Shown one piece after another: positions 8,387 to 20,298 of a DNA stretch of 64,000 bases. The notes below the pieces were generated by a model. The model did no database searches and had not been told where the DNA came from. It saw only the letters and a list, made by a program, of their open reading frames with translations. The DNA comes from Bigelowiella natans CCMP2755 (Eukaryota > Protista > Cercozoa). The position numbers were made by a program, and so were the translations under genes. Location of the stretch: assembly GCA_000320545.1 (NCBI GenBank), contig ADNK01001509.1, positions 1 through 64,000 of the forward strand, in the 5' to 3' direction. The first letter of the stretch is position 1. The number at the start of each line of letters is the position of its first letter.

Positions 8387-11300
8387 ATGTTTATTTTAAC
8401 AATCCTCGGCTTGGCCGTCTGCCACGTTCATGGATACATGTTTGCTTCTGGGAGTCAGCACTCAAAGTGCCAGAAGTATTGTTCAAAAGCCCTTTCTGTG
8501 TGTCCAGGGGAAACTTTGGAGTTTCGAAACTTCACGCAGTGTATGTCACAGTGCTCTGTAGCTCTGAAAGCGACGAACGGTACTTCAACCTTCAAAAATA
8601 GCTATTTGTAGGTTTGCAACAACGGCTGGTTTTGTATTTCTATCCGATTTGCGAGTGTTGTACTAAAATTCGATCGGCTTTCTTCAGCGACTGGGTGGAG
8701 CGCTATTTACGAGGATAGCATTGAATGTAGAACATACCACTTGGACCTTGCACATCAAACTGGGGTGCGCTTTACTTTATCATTGGATTTGATGGCATCA
8801 ACGTAAAGAATGTTACTTCTTGCACAAACAGGCCTTACGGACGCATTGTAGATTTGCTAGAATTGACGCCAATGTGATATCGGGAAGGTATTGTCGAAGT
8901 GACAACTTTTTGTGGGGACGTAGGGGGAATACTAAGAGAGCGCCATGAATCTTGCTAAGAGTATCATTTTGTTTATTTTTCGGTAAAGTTGTCCTCTAGG
9001 ATGTCCCTGCACGCGAAATTGCAGCTCCTCTTCAAGAACATACGCTCAATGTGTTGCCGGAAACCGTACCAATACGACTGACGGAGCAAACTTTCTCCTG
9101 CTTCTGGCCAAACACAAGACCGGTGTAAACGGATCTCTTTTTGACTCTTCCACACAGGTATAATCATCATGCGGATTTCGTACACAATCATTAGCACGCA
9201 CATCCTGACAAATGAGTCAGTATTGTTCTCGGCGTTGAGAAAGTAAACTCTAGAGACTCATGTATAAAAATATGTGGATCTCTTTTAACAAAACGTCTCT
9301 CCCCTCTCTCCTTCCCTCTTTCTCACGATTATGCTTGTGGCGTCACATGGAAGAACTCTCTTGACGTGTTCGCCGAAAGTCTATCCAGCGGAAGACATGG
9401 TGGGTGCGACGCAATCGTACAGTATAACCGTATCGGAAGCTATTGCGACATCGTAAGCTCTAGTTATCTCTCGAGCGTATTTGGTAATCAAGGCGTCGGA
9501 GCAAATGAAGCACTAGGCTACGCTCCGAAACTCTGCAAGCTCAACGAATCGTTTGCCACCTGCCCAGAGGTTGGTCATCGGTCAACTACAATCGCCAACG
9601 TGGCAATTGACGAGTGTTGGAATGCGTTGGAGAGTGCTGAAGTGTGCCAGCTTGAAGATGGGATGAGCAATCGAGCAAGCTGTTGTGCGGCTATCATGCA
9701 CCTGGACTCTTTGGGCTGCTTCTGCGACTCGGTTCTGTATTCGATGAGTAAGATCAATCCACATGGTCTGATATTAAATCTCAGGGCAATCGCCCTCCCC
9801 ACATGTGTGCCATTGTCGTCCCAGTACAACCAGACCTCCAGTGGTGGAGGATGCCCAACTTTTCCTGAATACGACTCACAAGAGGCGGTTTTGGCGTGTA
9901 CGGCATCAGCAGGGACTCCCTATAACCGCTCGCAACTAAATGTGATTCTAGGTGACAGAGTCAACACCATTATGCAACTGGAGCGAATCTTAGATTCTCA
10001 CACCAATGCCCCGTCCGCCACCACCAATAGCAGCAGCAGCAGTTTCGACTACGAATTGCTAGTAGAAGATATCTCCCCCTATGTGAATGCGGAGGCAGTG
10101 TTGCATGTAACAGAAGCAGGCAGCTACGTTGGCGTTGAGGGGTTCGTGACCTATTTCTCCCAATTCATGCCGGCAGCCAACAACGCCCTCTGGGAGCGCA
10201 GCACCATTCGTTTGTACGACTGGACGGTGAGAAATAGCAGCAGAATCGGTGTGCGAGTGCTCGAAGAGCACGTTCTCTTTGGAGGCGACCTCACAAGGAC
10301 GATCGAGAAGGTCCAGGAGTTTGAATTCCAACATTGCTCCTCCATGATATGGAGAGTCGTAGAGTCGTACCCCAACAACGAGCTCGTATCGCTTTTCCAG
10401 CGAGCCGTTTCCCACCCACGCTACGGGCCTGATGCCTATTGTAAGTCTATCTTCGACTACTGCATCGGGGACCTACAGGAGTTTGCGACGGTGGATGGGT
10501 GTATTTCATACCAAAATTCATTGCCAAAGGCCCAGTGCGGGAAGGGGCATCTGCTGCAGGGTAGCATATCGCCATGTAAGCTTCGCCATGCGCTTGCCAT
10601 TCCTTTCCGGCCTGACCACCACTGCCCACATGCTGGTTTTGGGAATAAAACCGATCGCGACGGAAATCGCTTCTGTGCCTCGAGCGAATGCTACACAACA
10701 GCAACGAAGCTTCAGCTGATGCCTGAAAATTCAACGGCAGCATTCACCAAGTTCTCCTCCAGTGAAACGTGCACATTGACAGAAAAGAGCCCACTTCTCA
10801 TCAAGGTGAGCGTTGCCGCTGCGAGTCCGTGCACTCCCTTTGCCCCCGCTGTCGCAGAGCTTGCTCTGAGGCCCATCACCAACGAATCATCGCTATACCT
10901 CCAGTCATTCTGCCGGCCCGCCTGGAACACTGGCGAGAGGGAAAACTACGACAATCGGCTCAATCAGTGCGATCTGAACGCCTTCTTTCCTGCATCATCC
11001 TCCTTTCACAACCGTGCATGCTCCCGTATCCGCCGCGGGGTGCGATTCGAAAGCTTGAAGTTTTCCTACCTCTGCGGGAGATATCCAAGGAGGGGTTCCA
11101 CCCTGGGCTCCGTCGGGGCACTGCTTCAGGCTGCCTCTCGGATCAGCGCCTTTGAAGATCTGGTGTGCTCCGCGGTGGAGGGCACAGCTGCGACTCACGT
11201 ATGTGAGGCCTGCAGCATGTCCGATATTAACAGCATCGTGGCTTGGGCGGACCTTGCAAATAACGACACGGAAATGTTTGTGGAGGACAACACACCTGTC

Positions 11301-11462
11301 TACTCCTCCGCGGCGCCCTCACGGTTCTGTGCAGAGATTCTTCACTATGCGTGTTCTAATGCTTACGGTAGTAGTAGTAGTAGTATTAGTAGTAGTGTAG
11401 TAGGTGTTGTTCTTGTTGTTATGGGGGTGTTGGGATGTTTATGTAAACGGCTGTTACTATGA
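8387..11462 (+). CDS. Secreted Cys-rich protein (~867 aa) with signal peptide, two Cys/His-rich modules, LTP-like CC/CxC segment, NTF2/SnoaL-like region and C-terminal hydrophobic anchor
   Basis: Proposed exons 8387-8579, 8688-8764, 8832-8887, 8989-9157, 9354-11462 (2604 nt, phases consistent). Signal MFILTILGLAVCHVHG. Module 1: CQKYCSKALSVCPG..F..FTQC...SIECRTYHL..A...HC. Module 2: YCKSIFDYCIG..EF..VDGC...SPCKLRHA....P.HHCPHAG. Ends with a poly-Ser spacer and VVGVVLVVMGVLGCL. Confidence 0.8.
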
Positions 11463-11507
11463 TCCTCCCCCCCCCTCATTTGTATCATCGACATCTGCAA
11501 GGTCGAA

Positions 11508-11549
<42 letters not shown>

Positions 11550-11720
11550 GTATATAATATTTAGATGCTTCTCTCAGGGTTTCGTCCTTCGTTTTGCAAA
11601 GCCTGCTTCCCGTCGCTTCCGCTGGGAGAGCTCGATCCAACGTCCACGCTGCCTATATGTCAAGGGGCGCTCACAGCGTTTTTCTCTTCCAATTGCACAG
11701 GTTATACGTGAGTTGAAGGC

Positions 11721-13023
11721 ATGGTTTCCGCCAATAACTTGATTAGCATTTTTGGTACATCCCTCATCTTCCTAGGAAGCAGCTCAGGCGCGTGGTACGA
11801 GAATGATGCAGCCCCATACGCTGACCCGTATATCACGGAGGGCCTTCCCGCCTATAAAGATACAACTAGCGATGCAGGCGCTCGGAAGGAGTTTGATTAC
11901 ATCATCGTTGGCGCCGGCACTGCGGGCTGCGTTGTCGCCCGACGACTCTCCGACGCAGGGCACTCGGTGCTAGTGCTTGACCAGGGGGAGGACTGGCAGC
12001 AAACCGAAGACTGGTGGAAAGCAACACGAGCGCCCCGAAATTCTAGGGAGCCGCATGATGCGAGTCCATTGCTACAGCGATTCGACTCCGAGTCCAACCC
12101 TGCTTTGTTTGGCCGCCAAGTGCCCGTAGTCTTAGGGGCCACGCTAGGGGGCACATCGTCAATCAACAACGGCTACTATTGGCGTCCAGAGGACAGAGAC
12201 TTCGATATGCATTGGGGGGAGGGGTGGAGTTCCGCTGAGGTCGCATCCTTCTTCTCAGCTGCGGAAGAACAAATGAAGCTACAGAACGGCAGTGGCGAGA
12301 CGCTAGGAGGCGCGTGGATGGCCGCTGCCAATGCGGCCGGTGTTCCATCTCTGCCAGGATCTGCACTTACCATGCAAGGAAACGCATCGGGGATTTTCCT
12401 CCCGAAAACGGTGTTCGTGAACAGCAGGCGCATGGACGCCTTCAAAGCCTACCTGCGCCCTATCATGCCTCGCAAAGGGCTGGAGGTGCGCACCAGAGCA
12501 TCCATCGCAAAGCTCATAATCGTGCAAGATTCAGACGTCAAGCGGGCAATTGGAGCTGTGTATATGCTCGCGGGGCAGCGGCGGGTCTCTGTTTACGCGA
12601 AGCGTGAGGTGATCCTAGCAGCTGGTTGGCTTGGATCTCCCAAAGTTCTGATGATGTCTGGAATCGGCCCCGCGGCTAGTCTGCGGAGTGTGGGTGTCAC
12701 CTCGATTATTGACGTACCAGGTCAGGGTGAAGTGGAAGCATAGCTGAGTGGTAAAGGGGGGGGGGGTGGGCATCAAGTAGTAACTACAACACCAATGTTC
12801 GCACCTGCATGCAACGATGTCGAAAGCACACAGCGTCACGTACACTCATCCACACCTCTAAAAATAAGGCGTTGGGAAGCAGTTGAAAGGAATAGCGAAG
12901 GTTAGGGTAGAGTCTGAGGGCCAGATTATTGGACCGGAGAAGCTCTCAAGAGTCGTTTATGCGTCGGATGCTCTCAGGGCGTGGTATCAAGAATACAATA
13001 TATACATATGTGTGTGCGTATAT

Positions 13024-13066
<43 letters not shown>

Positions 13067-16000
13067 CATGTGCATGTGCGTGTGCGTGTGCGTGTGTGAG
13101 ATTGTGCGCACGCCCTACATCACAATGTTGTTTGCCTCTCGATCTCCAGGTCTGTGAATGCCACTAGCGGTCAACCAACAGCATATGTAGGCGTAGTTGG
13201 AAGGTGGAGCTCAGGACTCTATGGCTCTACCGCATGCGACTATCGCCTGGAATTTACCGGAATTGATCGCAGCTGGGGAACTAGCAGCAGAGAGCAGGGA
13301 GGAGGGGGGGGGGGAGGCGGAGGTAGTAGCGGCGGTGGTAAGTCGGGCCTTCAACGGCTAGTGTCGGAGTGCTCATTGTGCAGTCCATACAGTAGTGGTG
13401 GGGGCGTTTCATTGCAATCTCCCAACCCCTCTGCAAATCCCAAGGTCTACTTTGGCTTGCTCAGTGACGACAGAGACGTGGACATCCTGCTCAGCTGTGT
13501 GAAGCAGCAGATTCGCATCCTGAACCAGCTCAAACATCGTGGACGCGATCTCTCTAGCGTCTCGCGCATGAGTGATGAGCAGCTGCAGACCTACATCCGC
13601 GCTCGCGCCACTTCGGTGATGAGGCGTACGGATCATGCAGGAAGGGTACGGGCAGCGACGACGTGGTGGGCCAAAACCTGCGTGTGCGTGGCTTCTCAAA
13701 CCTGCGAGTTGCCGACGGTTCCATCATTCCCCATGGCCTTTGCGCCGGTAGCATGGCCACCGTTCTCATGATCGGTGAGAAGGCCGCGGACCTGATCCTT
13801 TCTAACCCTCAAAGTGAATACTATGCTGGCCGGCACGTCATCGATCGCATTGAGGAGGCCATGTTGACAGGGGGGGGCGTGCTGCTTGTCGTTTTTTCGA
13901 TCACCGTCACGCTTTTTATCTGCGTTTGCATACGCTATTGGCCTACGAGGGAAGAATATCTCACCACAAGGCGGAAGCAAAAGGAGGAGGAGAGAAAGGC
14001 GCTGGAGGACCAATGCTGCCGGGACACACGCATGAAACTGAAGGGCATCACAAAGGTGCAAATGTCGGAGGTCGAGCTAAAGAAACTCACCAAAAGAATA
14101 GAAGTTCAGAAGGAGCGGCGGGCATCTCAACGGAGGGCCTCATCTCAAAGAAGGGCATCTGGCGATAAGAGAAGATCACGTCTTCGTGCATCGATTAATA
14201 AGTCCCTCCACACTCCGAATCCAATGGGAAGAGGTTCCATTATTACTAAATGCAGATCAAACACCAGGCTATCTGTGAGGAAATCATCTCCCACTACCAA
14301 ATCCACCCCACAGGAGCCGTCTCCTTCGAAGTTATTAAGCAAATCTGCCAGTGCATTTCTGACCCCACCGCAGAGACTAAAAGAAGGTAAGGACTTGCAA
14401 AATCCGGTAAAAAATGTAGCATCTTCTCTATCGCCAGCAGTAGAGCGGAAGTCAACCATAAGTGAAAGGGTATCGGGTATTCCCGGAGCGATTTACTCTC
14501 CAAGAGACCAAGAAAAGTCGCTGGTAAAGAAAATGCTTGTACGTCCACTGGAGGACCGTGACAGCTCGGTTAACACAGCAGAAATCGCGATTGAGATGAA
14601 GAGAAGGCCAGCGGAAAGAGATAAAGATCTCGACAACAACAACGAAGTTAGAGCGCATGAATTCCCCCGAAAGGTGAGCGGTACGTCTCAATTCATGGCC
14701 GGACTGCACAAAACGGAAACAATGAAGATTCAACAAAACGCCCTCGAAATACACTTCGCGAATCTCACCTACACAGCGAAGCGGACGCCGCTGTTACCGT
14801 GCAGCCGAGCGGAAGAGTTTAAGATCCTGAAGAACTGCACAGGGCATGTTGCTAGCGGCGAGCTTCTACTCATCATGGGCTCCAGTGGGTCCGGAAAGAC
14901 GACTCTCCTCAAGACGCTATCCCAGCGCTTTGTCGATGCAACTGTCGAAGGAGCGCTCTTCTACCAAATTGACGACGACGTGGTCGGCGCCGCAAATCCT
15001 GGAGTAGGAGACTACATACGGCGAAATATCGCGTTCGTGAGGCAGGAGACCGAGTTGATAGCCGGGCTGACGGCGTATGAAACAATGGTGTACTACTACA
15101 CCCTCATGGTGGCGCCGCAGACGAAGACGGAGCGGGAGAACTTAGACATGATCATGGGAACTCTCAAGTTCATTGGCCTGAACAACCACGCTCACAAATT
15201 CGTTGACGAGATGTCTGGTGGGCAGCAGCGGCGGCTCCAGATCGGCACACGTCTGCTTGACACGCCCAACGCGTTGTTCCTTGACGAACCCACGGCCGGG
15301 TTAGACGGTACAACGTCATTAAAGATCATGTACGTGTTGCAAAGCATCACAGAAATCTACGATATCCCCGTAGTAGCCTCAATCCATAGGCCTCGCCAGG
15401 AGGTGGTTCGAATCTCAGATCAAGTGTACTTGATGAACAATGGGGTCGGGATCTACCAAGGCCCTCTCATGTCTCTGGAAACTCTGATCTTAACGCTTCC
15501 GAAACACCGAAATCGCGCGGAGTTTACGCCGGGTGCATGTGCGGTGAGCTATTGCTTCGACTACGAATACGATCAGGATGTTCGTAAAGCGCTCACGCAG
15601 TACCATCGAGAAAGGCAAAACGCGAAGACAGTCGAAAGGGTGCAGATCTTTGTTGATCTCATTGATCCGAAGGAACCCTTTTACACCGACAACGGGCTGC
15701 GCATTGGCAATTGGCTTCTCGCAACAACTAGTTTCTTCAGCGTCTTCATTAACATGGTCGGCGTTCCGAAGAGCTGGAAGTACATCCTGCAGGACTTTGC
15801 CGTCGTCCACACCGCAGGGCTAACTTTCATTGGCGTGTCTTTGGTCTTCATCGTCTTTGTGCCTGGCTTCATGCCCGTAGAAGATACCGAGGACTTTACC
15901 ACGTTGCTGGGGGTGTTTTTGGTGTGGGGATCAACACACTTGGCCGTGTTCCAAGTCTCCGTTGCGCAGGTGCAGGTCGAAACCGACTACAAAAACTTCA

Positions 16001-17094
16001 AATTCTTCCTTGCAGACATGCTGATCACACCGCTGCAGGTCTGCATCTTTTGGGTCACCACGACGTTCGTTGTCTCTGCCTTTGCGATGATGTCCTTCTA
16101 CTTTTTCTACTTTGGCAACGGGTTCGTAGCAGAGCATGCTCTCTCCAGTGGCCTGTGTTGGTTTCTCTACTTGATGCAGGCTTGCATGGCTGTGACACTG
16201 TTCCAGGTGACATTCGGCAATAAGATAGCTCCGGGTGTTTATGGACTTTGGTGTACCGTGCAGACCGTCTTTAACGGATGTGGCATTCCACTCACCGCCA
16301 TTCCCTATCACTGGCGGTGGTTGCGCTGGATTAACCCACTTTACTACGTCTTCAGCACCCAGCTCTCTCTCCAACTAGGAGTTGGCAACACTCTGACATG
16401 TGGTGAAGGCTGCAACCAAGTTCTCGATAATCTAGGGTACCAAGATGCGGACATATTCACCACGGTGCTGGTCTTATGCGCGTTCTTCATCGGACAAGTC
16501 ATGCTGTTGTACTTCTCAGTATCTAGGGCCGACGCAAGGATGCGCAATTCTGGCGTGATCCATCCAATGAAAAAGAAGGATAAATACGATCTCCGGATTG
16601 AAGCGGGGGAGCTCCTCGAGACGACGAAAACCGCTTATTTTGCCCGGGTGGACATAAGAAAAGCCATGGAGACAAAGCTTAACTCCTTCAAGACGCGCGA
16701 CGCCAAAAGCATGGAACTGGGTGTGGGTTCAGATGATCCGTTTGCGGCGGATTCGAGATCGTATAGCCGAGCCAGGGCACAAACCAACAGAACAAAAATC
16801 ATTACTGAGAGCTTTGGTAACTTTCAAAACAGAAGCAGATCTGGCCGCAAAGCTCTACATGAGGAACCGCCTCGACATGTGTCAAAGTCGTGTCTATCTG
16901 ATAAATCTGGCACCGCTTTCGGTGACGATTGCGGCCGCGCCAACAGCATTCCCATAGATAGGTCTGAATCAAGTGCCACACCGCCATTAAATGAAAGAGT
17001 CGATCCTTCTAAACAATCAAAATCCGGTCATGTGAGAACAACTGAACCGAGAATTGCCATTCGCAAAGTCAATACAGCTTCAAATAGAGTGTGA
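11721..17094 (+). CDS. GMC oxidoreductase - single TM - ABCG (NBD-TMD) half-transporter fusion, ~1686 aa, with one apparent 1-nt frameshift near 13616
   Basis: Exons 11721-12720, 12869-12983, 13150-17094. Signal peptide; FDYIIVGAGTAG (FAD binding); GATLGGTSSIN; GSPKVLMMSGIG; PG|VGKQL; GSCRKG..VVGQNLRVRGFSNLRVADGSIIP...MIGEKAADLIL. The same ORF continues into a TM helix, Walker A GSSGSGKT, Q-loop, MSGGQ signature, Walker B LFLDEPTAGLD, SIHRP and a TMD with PYHWRWLRWINPLYY. Confidence 0.9.
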
Positions 17095-17545
17095 TTTAAA
17101 ATTGAATTTATTATCAATGGAAGTGTAGAAGACTATTGACACAGTTTATGAGACGGGCGTAATGGACTATTTTTTTTTTTAATTGTCATCCTAATGCAGC
17201 TTTGCAAAGCTACGGCTATGACGACACAGTTGACATAATATGCCTAACATGTATCCTGTAAACGTTCAGTTGATATGATGTTCATATATGTGTCCTCTAA
17301 GCGTTACACAGACCTCACAGATGCATTCTAGATTTGTTAAAATTGACGCGAATCACTGACTTACATTCATGAATATATCAGAAAGTCTCAAATGATGATA
17401 ATGGTGTTAGCTGGTGGCGGAAAACTCCATGCAATTCGCACACTAGTAAAGATGTAAATGCAATTGTGTACTTAGGCCCCTATCGGAGCTCAGAGCTAGT
17501 TGGGCTCCATGAATGGCTACACATGAACACATAGTAGACTGCCCA

Positions 17546-18025: not shown

Positions 18026-20298
18026 TCATGATCCATCAGCATGTCTTTGGAGCCTTTCGATTAGCGCGGCTTTGTTGCCAGAAACCTTTAAACCTTTCTC
18101 CTGGAGGATGCTTTTTAGTTCGGCAACCTTCATCCCGGAATAATCCTTGGTCGGATCTATTATTTTGCTATTGCCTTCCTCAGCTGTCGGATTTGCTGCG
18201 ACAGAGGTAGAGTCCCCATCTCCCTCTTCTTCAGTTATGGATTGTCGCGCTATTATTTTTTGTGAATGCCCAAGACTATCAACTGCATTCATGTTAAATG
18301 GGGCCTCCTCTACAAAGGAATCCCTGATATCCGAAAAGCTGTCTTCTCTACTGCCCATGCCAGGTGACGATGAAAGCGGTGATATTGTGATCGGAGGCTG
18401 GTATTCTTCTTCCATCAGGCCTTTCTCTATAGCTGCCAAGTCGATTCCGTGGCTTACACCGTCCTCAACACTATCAGCATATGTTGCGCAGTTTTAGTTG
18501 CCATACACATGAACAGACGGAAACATGCGAGAAAAACTGTTCTAAAGCCACTTCAACCGCAATACAAACACATGCGCGCCTAATGTGAAGGATCATCACA
18601 AACTTACGTATTATCGAGCAGCGAGTCATCCTCGAAAAAATCGAATTGACCCTAGGAGTAAGAAAATGCCGGGAAAAACATGTGAATTAGAGTATTTTGA
18701 AACAGGATTGCATGATATGCTGAGAAATCACCTCACTCCCCTCCCCCCCCCCCCCCCCCCCCCTCTCCACTTCAATACCAAAATATCGTCATCAGCAGTT
18801 TCTCCAACAAATAATGGGTCCTCTTCCAGATCATCTTCGTAGAAAAGGAGATGATTATAGTCATCAACCTTTGCCGGGGGGGTATGATCAGAGGGGGAGG
18901 CAGAGCTTGCTACAGCGGCATCTGCATCATCTTCTCTGCGAGAGAGGTGCCCTCCCATGAATAAAGTATCGACTTCATCATCTGCTGGGCCGGCAGTTAG
19001 ATCATCGGGCAAGAACAACTCGTGCTCGTTCAACACATCCTTGTCACCATCCTCCCTCTCCCTAATGTCCCGATCCTCTTGTAAAGACTTTGATGAGCCG
19101 GGACTCAGGCGCTGGTGACGACGATATTCTTCTCCCTCATCTTCTTCTTCTTCCTCTTCGTCTTCATCATCATCTCCTCCTCTAGAATGTTTTAGATCGT
19201 TCCATGCTGTAAGCTCTGAATCAGACATGTTGTCGATTGCAGCATCATGTTCAATAGGTTCTCTTAATCCTCTTCCTTCCTCCTTCTCCTCCCCCTCCTC
19301 CTCCCCAATTTCTCCAAAATCTAGTGTTAGCTGAGAAAAGTCTCGGAAAAGCCCCGCAACTCTCCCGCTCCCCTGATAAAATAAGACATCAAAGGAAGCA
19401 ACGAGGAGGAGGAAGAGGAAGAGGGGGAGGGAGCGGGAAAGTGGGTGTTAGGTGGATATATAGTAGTATAAGATAGAGAGCCTTCAGAAATAAAATATGC
19501 GGAGCACTGCAGCGCCGATGGTGACTTTCTGTTGTATCTTCTTGTTCTCCATCCCACCCCCCTCCTCCACACACACACACACATTACACAAAAACATACA
19601 TGCATATATATACGACTGACTGTTACCTCTTCTTCACGCACTGAACTTCCTTGGCCTTCTCCTTCAATATAGAAGTAACATCACCACACGAACAACCAAA
19701 CACAAATTCTAAGGTGTACCCGAAACGCGAGAGAGGGGGAGAGAGGGAAGAAGAATAATAGAGAAGGCCATAGATTATATCGGTGGAGGAAATAGAGAGA
19801 GAGGGATAGAGAGGAGGGGAGGGGGGGCTGTCTCCTTACTTTGCTCTTCATCACCAATTTCACTGCTATGAGCACTGTTTTCCTTGAGAGCTATGAGGAA
19901 AGCATATTCGTCGACGTGATCGTCAAACATATCGAATTTGTCCTGATAGGGATAATATCAACGCCGTCATCATCATCAACAACCGCAACAACGATGAAGA
20001 CGATGATGACGGTGGTGATCCCCGTCACAATTTGAACAATTGGGCAGAGACACGCACACGCTCAGGTATGTGTGAGTACATTCGCTCACATAGCTGTGGT
20101 TGGGTATGAGGGATAGAATGGCCGATGAAGTCTTTCTTCAGCAGCATGCGCTCTATCTCTACTACTGCTGCTGCTACTATTGCTACTACTACTGCTCGTA
20201 TTACTACAACTACTACAACAACTACAACTACTACTACTGCTTCTCCCTGGGCAGGGAGGGTAGATTCAATTCCTTACATATAAATTATATATGTATGC

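Follow-up and report, generated by a model that had tools for sequence, protein, structure and literature searches.

The stretch of DNA analysed here (hereafter the window) comprises 64,000 nucleotides (nt) of contig ADNK01001509.1 from the genome of Bigelowiella natans CCMP2755, and the subject of this report is a locus on its forward strand, where a flavoprotein of the GMC family is joined to an ABC transporter of the ABCG type. Positions 8387-17094 very probably constitute one expressed gene with a product of approximately 2,533 amino acids (aa). Its mRNA is obtained by removal of eight introns, four of which, in the 5' part, are taken from the gene model of the Joint Genome Institute (JGI) and four from the RNA data used here; the length of 2,533 residues was computed from the lengths of the exons. 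In the encoded protein a signal peptide is followed by a Cys-rich ectodomain of ~860 aa, a GMC domain, a transmembrane (TM) helix, a disordered basic linker, a nucleotide-binding domain (NBD), a transmembrane domain (TMD) with six TM segments and a tail. All searches and folding were performed with pieces encoded by single exons and not with the joined spliced protein.

The core of the locus is an open reading frame (ORF) of 1143 aa (13663-17094, + strand), which contains the end of GMC_oxred_C, the TM helix, the linker and the ABCG half-transporter. Fusion of an oxidoreductase with a transporter within this uninterrupted frame had been claimed in an earlier note made from the letters of the window, and the claim was borne out by Pfam, which registered both the end of GMC_oxred_C and ABC_tran there. 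Transcription of the fusion was followed in RNA contigs from three runs of three studies (X1, X3 and X8), while the raw-read run X20 placed only 13 reads on the locus. A single contig of X1 spans 13505-17364 with no joint, and overlapping pieces are present in X3 and X8. Since the X1 contig is continuous, the GMC end, TM helix, linker and ABCG part share one RNA, the 3' untranslated region of which extends to at least 17364. Thus, the joined GMC, TM helix, linker and ABCG parts are transcribed, and in other organisms they are likewise kept as one ORF (see below).

The EukProt entry jgi/Bigna1/136355 (P0274, a model of 855 aa) has 100% identity with the upstream ORF 9366-11462 and maps exactly to the first four exons of Table 1 and to 9354-11462. 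A second public model, P0121, is a 229-aa piece of the NBD, and P0275 (340 aa), listed as a product of the window itself, corresponds to ORF 11721-12743. With models of 855 and 229 aa and the product of the 340-aa ORF, the locus is split by public annotation. No paralogous fusion was found in the B. natans genome: identity reaches 33% for the closest ABCG protein, in its NBD, and 32% for the closest GMC protein.

Table 1. Features of the GMC-ABCG fusion gene, in coordinates of the window
Feature	Position	Strand	Evidence
Exon 1: start codon, signal peptide MFILTILGLAVCHVHG, first Cys-rich stretch	8387-8579	+	Mapping of JGI model P0274; hydrophobic N-terminus
Three small ectodomain exons (8688-8764, 8832-8887, 9025-9157) with introns	8688-9157	+	JGI model only
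Large ectodomain exon (E1)	9354-11367	+	ORF; homology to relatives; invariant Cys; donor GT at 11368
Intron, 210 nt, GT..AG, with (TA)n run	11368-11577	+	Loose end of X8 contig equals 11337-11366
Exon E2, 123 nt; ectodomain continues as FRPSFCKACF	11578-11700	+	RNA contigs X1, X3, X8; in frame on both sides
Intron, 75 nt, with in-frame TGA (11709-11711) and ATG 11721	11701-11775	+	X1 joint 11698>11774 (cut +2)
Exon E3: GMC_oxred_N, FAD motif DYIIVGAGTAGC	11776-12720	+	Pfam E 2.6e-28; 44% identity to P0271 601-914
Mini-exon E4, 115 nt, GMC domain	12869-12983	+	Joints 12718>12867 and 12982>13149 in X1, X3, X8
Last exon, first part (E5): remainder of substrate domain, poly-Gly insert, GMC_oxred_C	13150-13875	+	Pfam; RNA
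Single TM anchor helix GVLLVVFSITVTLFICVCI between outer and cytosolic parts	13876-13932	+	Kyte-Doolittle 2.84, strongest in the protein
Basic Ser-rich linker, ~290 aa (Lys + Arg 22%, Ser 11%)	13933-14811	+	Composition; jointless RNA cover
NBD	14827-15400	+	Pfam ABC_tran E 7e-22, aa 389-545 of ORF 13663-17094
Walker A GSSGSGKTT	14878-14904	+	Motif scan
Q-loop VRQ	15037-15045	+	Motif scan
Signature SGGQ	15214-15225	+	Motif scan
Walker B LFLDEP	15274-15291	+	Motif scan
H-loop SIHRP	15379-15393	+	Motif scan
ABCG-type membrane domain with six hydrophobic segments and, before the last of them, an outer loop that contains Cys	15694-16509	+	Hydropathy
Basic Ser-rich C-terminal tail and stop codon	16510-17094	+	End of ORF

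To find relatives of the fusion, the 1143-aa ORF was used as the query in a HMMER scan that covered 1.84 billion cluster representatives. The combination of GMC with ABCG is common to seven clusters (50% identity), which come mostly from Tara Oceans or other meta-omic assemblies, and the long relatives score above the mass of ordinary ABCGs. P0123 and P0269, 2,154-2,157 aa long, are single ORFs on genomic scaffolds. P0124 and P0271 have 1,798 and 1,939 aa, the latter as a single ORF on a contig from JGI sample 3300018948; for P0128 and P0272 the lengths are 2,031 and 2,643 aa, and P0272 is again a single ORF, as is P0144 from EukProt (2,078 aa). In all of these (P0123, P0124/P0271, P0128/P0272 and P0144) Pfam registers the same succession, in which ~600 aa are followed by GMC_oxred_N, GMC_oxred_C, ABC_tran and ABC2_membrane. 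P0125 and P0396 (901 and 1,654 aa, P0396 being a single ORF) have GMC_oxred_N, GMC_oxred_C and ABC_tran after ~310 aa, with no match to ABC2_membrane in Pfam, and P0122 is a partial sequence of 609 aa with 40% identity, which covers the ABCG part only. The records originate from a 126-kb metagenome scaffold, an NCBI assembly, the contig of JGI 3300018948 and Tara metagenomes, one cluster member being derived from the 0.22-3 µm Tara fraction, and because their GC content varies between 40 and 60% they represent several organisms.

Four pieces of the B. natans gene placed by BLAST, namely E1, E3 and the parts of the last exon before and after a frame break described below (E5a and E5b), are colinear with P0271. 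E1 corresponds to its residues 48-561 (E 3e-55) and also to the N-termini of P0123, P0144 and P0272, E5a corresponds to residues 961-1092, and E5b to 1094-1195 and 1268-1909. E2 was placed by alignment, and E4 fits the stretch 915-960 of P0271 left unmatched by the other exons. The upstream ORF has homologues in the N-terminal domains of the relatives, and the upstream "gene" is thus a part of the fusion architecture. Each relative has a signal-like N-terminus, and the topology proposed earlier for the B. natans protein, with the GMC domain outside, one TM helix, a cytosolic linker, NBD and TMD, recurs in all of them. By comparison of sequences the three-part layout is an old, conserved architecture.

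The transporter part has all five ATPase motifs and an NBD placed before a single domain of six TM segments, and on these features it is predicted to be an ABCG (reverse-order) half-transporter. Its best matches among solved structures are all of the ABCG type (Cdr1, Pdr5, ABCG1, ABCG8 and plant ABCG16/25), and the alignment with ABCG1 (7fdv) covers both NBD and TMD (query 19-614, chain 72-670). The Pfam family ABC2_membrane (PF01061) gave no match in B. natans at E<=0.01, although the relatives do match. An equivalent of the TM helix stands straight after the GMC domain in P0271, P0123, P0128, P0144 and P0272, and the linker behind it is variable in length, measuring ~105-190 aa in the relatives.

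Contigs of X1, X3 and X8 meet the genome at GT..AG joints and hence come from spliced RNA. The four junctions provided by them are all GT/AG, mutually in frame and in frame with the upstream ORF. Splices 12720/12869 and 12983/13150 were found in all three runs; what had been taken for a single intron within the GMC domain is a pair of introns flanking the mini-exon E4. The E3/E4 junction restores PGVGKQL, i.e. the GMC motif PGVGxNL. The start of the protein also had to be moved. The previously supposed start codon, ATG 11721, lies together with its signal peptide inside the 75-nt intron, which is spliced out in X1, and the protein begins ~860 aa upstream of it, with another signal peptide and the large Cys-rich ectodomain. 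For E2, the probability of being open and in phase at both ends by chance is, in a rough estimate, 1 in 20. The sequence across the E1/E2 junction, ACSNAY-G-FRPSFCKACF, matches VCSN-TNRVPAFCDTCF and ACANIASERPLLCDACF within uninterrupted ORFs of the relatives, so that the motif C[SA]N..RP.FC..CF spans the junction just as it does there.

Processing of this RNA is not uniform, and one may ask whether the locus gives several products, the N-terminal domain alone from RNA with the retained intron 11368-11577 and a GMC-ABCG protein with a signal peptide of its own from ATG 11721, translated from transcripts that keep the intron or begin internally, with the giant fusion as a minor isoform. Reading through the first of these introns yields the C-terminus of the JGI model, SSSVVGVVLVVMGVLGCLCKRLLL (...KRLLL), a Ser-rich hydrophobic tail with a stop codon at 11460-11462. 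The joint 11700/11776 was registered in X1 only, and the X3 contig 11577-11803 keeps the 75-nt intron, which brings a stop and, 10 nt on, ATG 11721 with a hydrophobic stretch. RNA depth over the ABCG part, moreover, is 2-3 times that over the 5' exons. A rise in depth towards the 3' end is, however, usual for long poly(A)-selected mRNAs, and reinitiation after a frame of ~870 codons would be inefficient. Every 5' contig of the three studies begins at the acceptor 11577, and X8 has the upstream exon joined. The junction motif, besides, is conserved in single ORFs of the relatives, all of which have the N-terminal domain and GMC in one frame. We therefore regard the division of the locus between several products as unlikely and keep to one gene encoding the complete fusion.

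Two details of the introns deserve mention in their own right. The read-through end of the N-terminal domain (11368-11462), with its Ser-rich part and hydrophobic tail, resembles a glycosylphosphatidylinositol (GPI) signal or membrane anchor and may belong to an anchored isoform. In the 75-nt intron the stop is followed by an ATG and a signal-peptide-like stretch in the GMC frame, which could serve as an alternative start but could also be there by chance.

On 13288-13482 no RNA contig was found in any of the three runs, despite the conserved coding sequence of this region, which aligns to residues 961-1092 of P0124 and holds the start of GMC_oxred_C. An intron at this place was considered and rejected: the contigs end raggedly (13257, 13278 and 13287) without loose ends, and the stretch is open. 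The hole is probably technical, conditioned by a G-run at ~13296-13340 (poly-Gly) and by words shared with a fragment on contig C1200. Words shared with the same C1200 copy are the reason why RNA contigs of the fusion gene are broken at 13505-13534. The copy itself (C1200:61000-61215, L006 1501-1716) is a fragment of ~160 nt corresponding to 13483-13644 of the window, in the GMC_C region; it is 95% identical across the first 81 nt, after which a 39-nt insert follows. In the RNA assemblies the transcript of the C1200 locus is the more abundant one, by a factor of 3-4.

In the genomic sequence GMC_oxred_C begins in frame 2 and, from near 13610, continues in frame 1, and PF05199 is matched in two pieces, by profile positions 1-84 in frame 2 (13385-13615) and 103-139 of 139 at aa 2-38 of ORF 13663-17094. 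Transcript contigs of X1 and X3 have one extra C after 13610 and read in a single frame, RARATFGDEAYGSCRKG. This C, absent from the genome and present in two RNA studies, restores the GMC frame. The C1200 copy also reads ACCTTCGG at the site of the break, and in the alignment with P0124 E5a ends at residue 1092 and E5b begins at 1094, leaving no gap. A tiny intron near 13610 was rejected, since the sole GT..AG candidate (25 nt) gives a wrong frame and the RNA shows the missing C. The X1 and X3 contigs also disagree with the genome at 13535, 13540 and 13543, three bases at which the C1200 copy has the genomic letter; elsewhere in 3.7 kb they are identical to it. That these three differences and the absent C are crowded into 75 nt suggests gene conversion or an assembly made from mixed reads. 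After 13611 RNA and genome do not differ, and RNA contigs are continuous across the GMC/ABCG junction; misassembly at this point, which could have produced an apparent fusion, is therefore absent.

Taken at face value, the break near 13610 would mean a decaying gene, in which nothing but the ABCG part matters and the GMC domain is no more than a relic. The genome without the C, three further differences within 75 nt and loss of the catalytic residues (see below) are what one would expect of decay. It is at odds, however, with transcripts of two studies and with the C1200 copy, which have the C and the open frame, with identity of the remaining 3.7-kb contig to the genome, with the GMC domain, which is 33-44% identical to those of the relatives and keeps its motifs, and with expression registered in three studies. 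Decay thus appears very improbable. We attribute the frame break to gene conversion, to polymorphism of the strain or to a local mistake in the assembly, and regard the gene as a living one.

The outermost part of the protein is its Cys-rich ectodomain, where ~22 Cys residues are invariant across five sequences, as fits a secreted, disulfide-bonded domain. The large ectodomain exon includes the stretch C..C..CC..CFC..C..C, and residues 84-163 of E1 have the spacing of the plant 8-Cys motif, which is conserved. The predicted model of this stretch consists of four helices with a mean confidence score (pLDDT) of 73.7, and for the model of the whole ectodomain the score was 34.5, too low for the model to be used. 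A fold similar to that of lipid transfer proteins (LTPs) was considered and remained unsupported: Pfam gave no match in B. natans and E 0.35 for P0271, a profile search of the 8-Cys stretch against PDB returned no LTP or 2S albumin with significance, and in the fold search the best Foldseek hit of the 8-Cys model had E 1.4 and the best VIA hit, to an unrelated protein, Z 5.1. Pfam scans of the N-terminal ORFs revealed no EGF family. The ectodomain carries a precomputed Pfam tag, PF28386 BfoA_C, on which a literature search found nothing relevant; a scan of JGI metagenome contigs with the alignment of the N-terminal domain confirmed nothing.

The GMC domain is complete and occupies ~528 aa over four exons, with GMC_oxred_N (PF00732) found in ORF 11721-12743. 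The GxGxxG motif for binding of flavin adenine dinucleotide (FAD) is kept in five of the six clusters aligned. Among PDB entries the best match of E3 is fatty acid photodecarboxylase (CvFAP, E 4e-28), and the same protein is the best match for the GMC domain of P0271, while with the full-length GMC domain alcohol oxidase and chloramphenicol-inactivating oxidoreductase score about like FAP.

With a signal peptide and only one TM helix before the transporter, and given that NBDs of ABC proteins are cytosolic, the Cys-rich and GMC domains are predicted to lie outside the cell or in a lumen, and the linker, NBD and tail inside. ABCG half-transporters are dimers and mostly move lipids or hydrophobic compounds. 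By analogy with them, the B. natans protein would act as a homodimer, the ABCG part of which would export a hydrophobic, probably lipid-like compound, and the tethered flavoprotein ectodomain would take this compound at the outer face and modify or hold it. To the explanation as a whole we assign a probability of about 0.55, but its parts are graded separately: the architecture can be regarded as highly probable, whereas export followed by processing at the surface, suggested by analogy, has in our estimate somewhat less than an even chance. A broader proposal, that the protein is a founding member of a so far undescribed class of export-and-process machines in marine protists, where a pump is tethered to a flavoenzyme and a disulfide-rich docking domain and a lipid-like compound is modified or polymerised on leaving the membrane, is at present doubtful in our view.

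Several observations weigh against this explanation. The stretch 13288-13504 is bridged by no RNA contig, so that the 5' GMC exons are linked to ABCG only by the open frame and homology. Retention of the stop-containing 75-nt intron in one contig means that other isoforms exist, and the searches described above recognised no fold in the N-terminal domain. The closest standalone GMC proteins are bacterial, choline/4-pyridoxate-dehydrogenase-like, with 35-38% identity, and not plant HOTHEAD. Finally, the active site is unusual. In the alignment with choline oxidase (2jbv) the position of His466 is occupied by Glu and that of Asn510 by Gly. In the six-cluster family alignment, where bacterial GMCs served as a reference, the first catalytic position is E/H/D/H/S/G, with His in two of the six, while at the second every cluster has Gly or Ala, with an invariant Cys two residues before it.

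Because the canonical His/Asn pair is lost, textbook alcohol oxidation cannot be assumed. A classical FAD oxidase, turning an exported alcohol into an aldehyde and releasing H2O2, would be in line with the complete GMC_N and GMC_C parts, the FAD motif and the catalytic His kept in P0271 and P0128. It would also have a precedent in leaf beetles, the secreted GMC salicyl alcohol oxidase of their defensive secretions (reference 37 in PMC4041752). Given Glu and Gly in B. natans itself and absence of the second residue throughout the family, classical oxidation seems to us improbable, even more so than the division of the locus between several products. At the same time, FAP, with Ala at the first catalytic position, demonstrates that a protein of GMC fold can be an enzyme even if it lacks the canonical pair. 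With the FAD motifs kept and the His/Asn pair lost, we anticipate that flavin chemistry takes place here at an active site of non-canonical type, or that the B. natans domain perhaps only binds the compound. From the earlier suggestion that export is coupled to oxidation or binding of the exported substrate at the cell surface, the oxidation part is weakened by this Glu/Gly replacement, and the coupling of export to events at the surface is still something that we infer.

Comparison with known systems shows which elements of this architecture have parallels. The additional module of yeast Adp1 lies in the lumen or outside the cell, and an extra TM helix comes after it. As in B. natans, an ABCG half-transporter stands there behind an added N-terminal module; the module of B. 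natans differs in being ~1,400 aa long and in consisting of a new Cys-rich domain and a whole GMC domain, with no EGF domain registered by Pfam. Half-size ABCGs with extra N-terminal sequence, Adp1 for example, are known, and the EGF domain is the most common among such additions (PMC9426558). Sequence searches revealed no particular closeness of the B. natans protein to Adp1-like proteins. Animal ABCG1, ABCG2 and ABCG5-G8 and fungal Cdr1 and Pdr5 share with it the NBD-before-TMD order and all the ATPase motifs, but their N-terminus is cytosolic, they lack an ectodomain, and their identity to the B. natans protein is only ~25-33%. CvFAP is similar in lacking the canonical His, its aligned position being Ala. 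It differs in being soluble and plastid-located, and the stretch with the FAP-specific active-site residues, C432 and R451 in CvFAP, did not align.

In leaf beetles a precursor is carried through the membrane by an ABC pump of the ABCC type and is converted beyond it by a GMC enzyme; these are, in contrast to the B. natans fusion, two unrelated proteins working in an animal gland. ABC transporters of sequestering leaf-beetle larvae were profiled in PMC4041752. The plant toolkit for cutin and sporopollenin includes ABCG exporters (e.g. OsABCG15/26), HOTHEAD-type GMC proteins, fatty acyl reductases and LTPs (PMC12309059). The likeness here consists in an ABCG exporter and a GMC flavoprotein that serve long-chain lipids outside the cell, and for B. 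natans the link to lipids would be drawn by analogy. In plants, however, these are separate proteins, and the GMC domain of B. natans has its closest counterparts in choline-dehydrogenase-like proteins of bacteria and not in HOTHEAD.

Another combination of the same partners was noticed in P0205 (L024 452-7474, Logan contig of SRR22388123), a 7-kb transcript ORF of 2,340 aa. Its order is a fatty acyl reductase domain (NAD_binding_4), a full-size ABCG with two NBDs and two TMDs, and GMC_oxred_C, i.e. it is an independent, differently ordered GMC-ABCG fusion. Together with the plant cutin and sporopollenin literature, P0205 makes a lipid substrate plausible, rather than established.

A literature search combining GMC with ABCG, fusion, Pfam names and half-transporter returned only papers on separate plant or insect proteins, and, in line with the earlier note, no described enzyme-ABCG fusion was found there. 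An ABCG half-transporter whose ectodomain bears an enzyme, an arrangement conserved among marine protists, is thus apparently undescribed. ABCG transporters export lipids, sterols, waxes and drugs, and to our knowledge the fate of the substrate at their outer face is mostly unknown. In a natural fusion of a pump with a flavoprotein, hand-over to an enzyme or acceptor could be studied within one polypeptide. If the proposed reading is true, the fusion would provide independent evidence that ABCG and GMC proteins share substrates, which for the plant cuticle and pollen wall comes from genetics only, and it would point to an overlooked surface-lipid pathway in picoplankton. For the annotation of B. 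natans it means that the gene is split across models and that the genome has here a 1-nt error or polymorphism.

As to neighbouring genes, P0123 is accompanied on one side (L021 1-2596, - strand) by a gene for 4,015 aa with L-type lectin and filamin domains and on the other by a PIF1 helicase gene, and the same neighbours are present in L020. In the window itself, positions 18026-18439 (- strand) contain an ORF of 137 aa, the end of which resembles the SAP DNA-binding motif, KVAELKSILQEKGLKVSGNKAALIERLQ.

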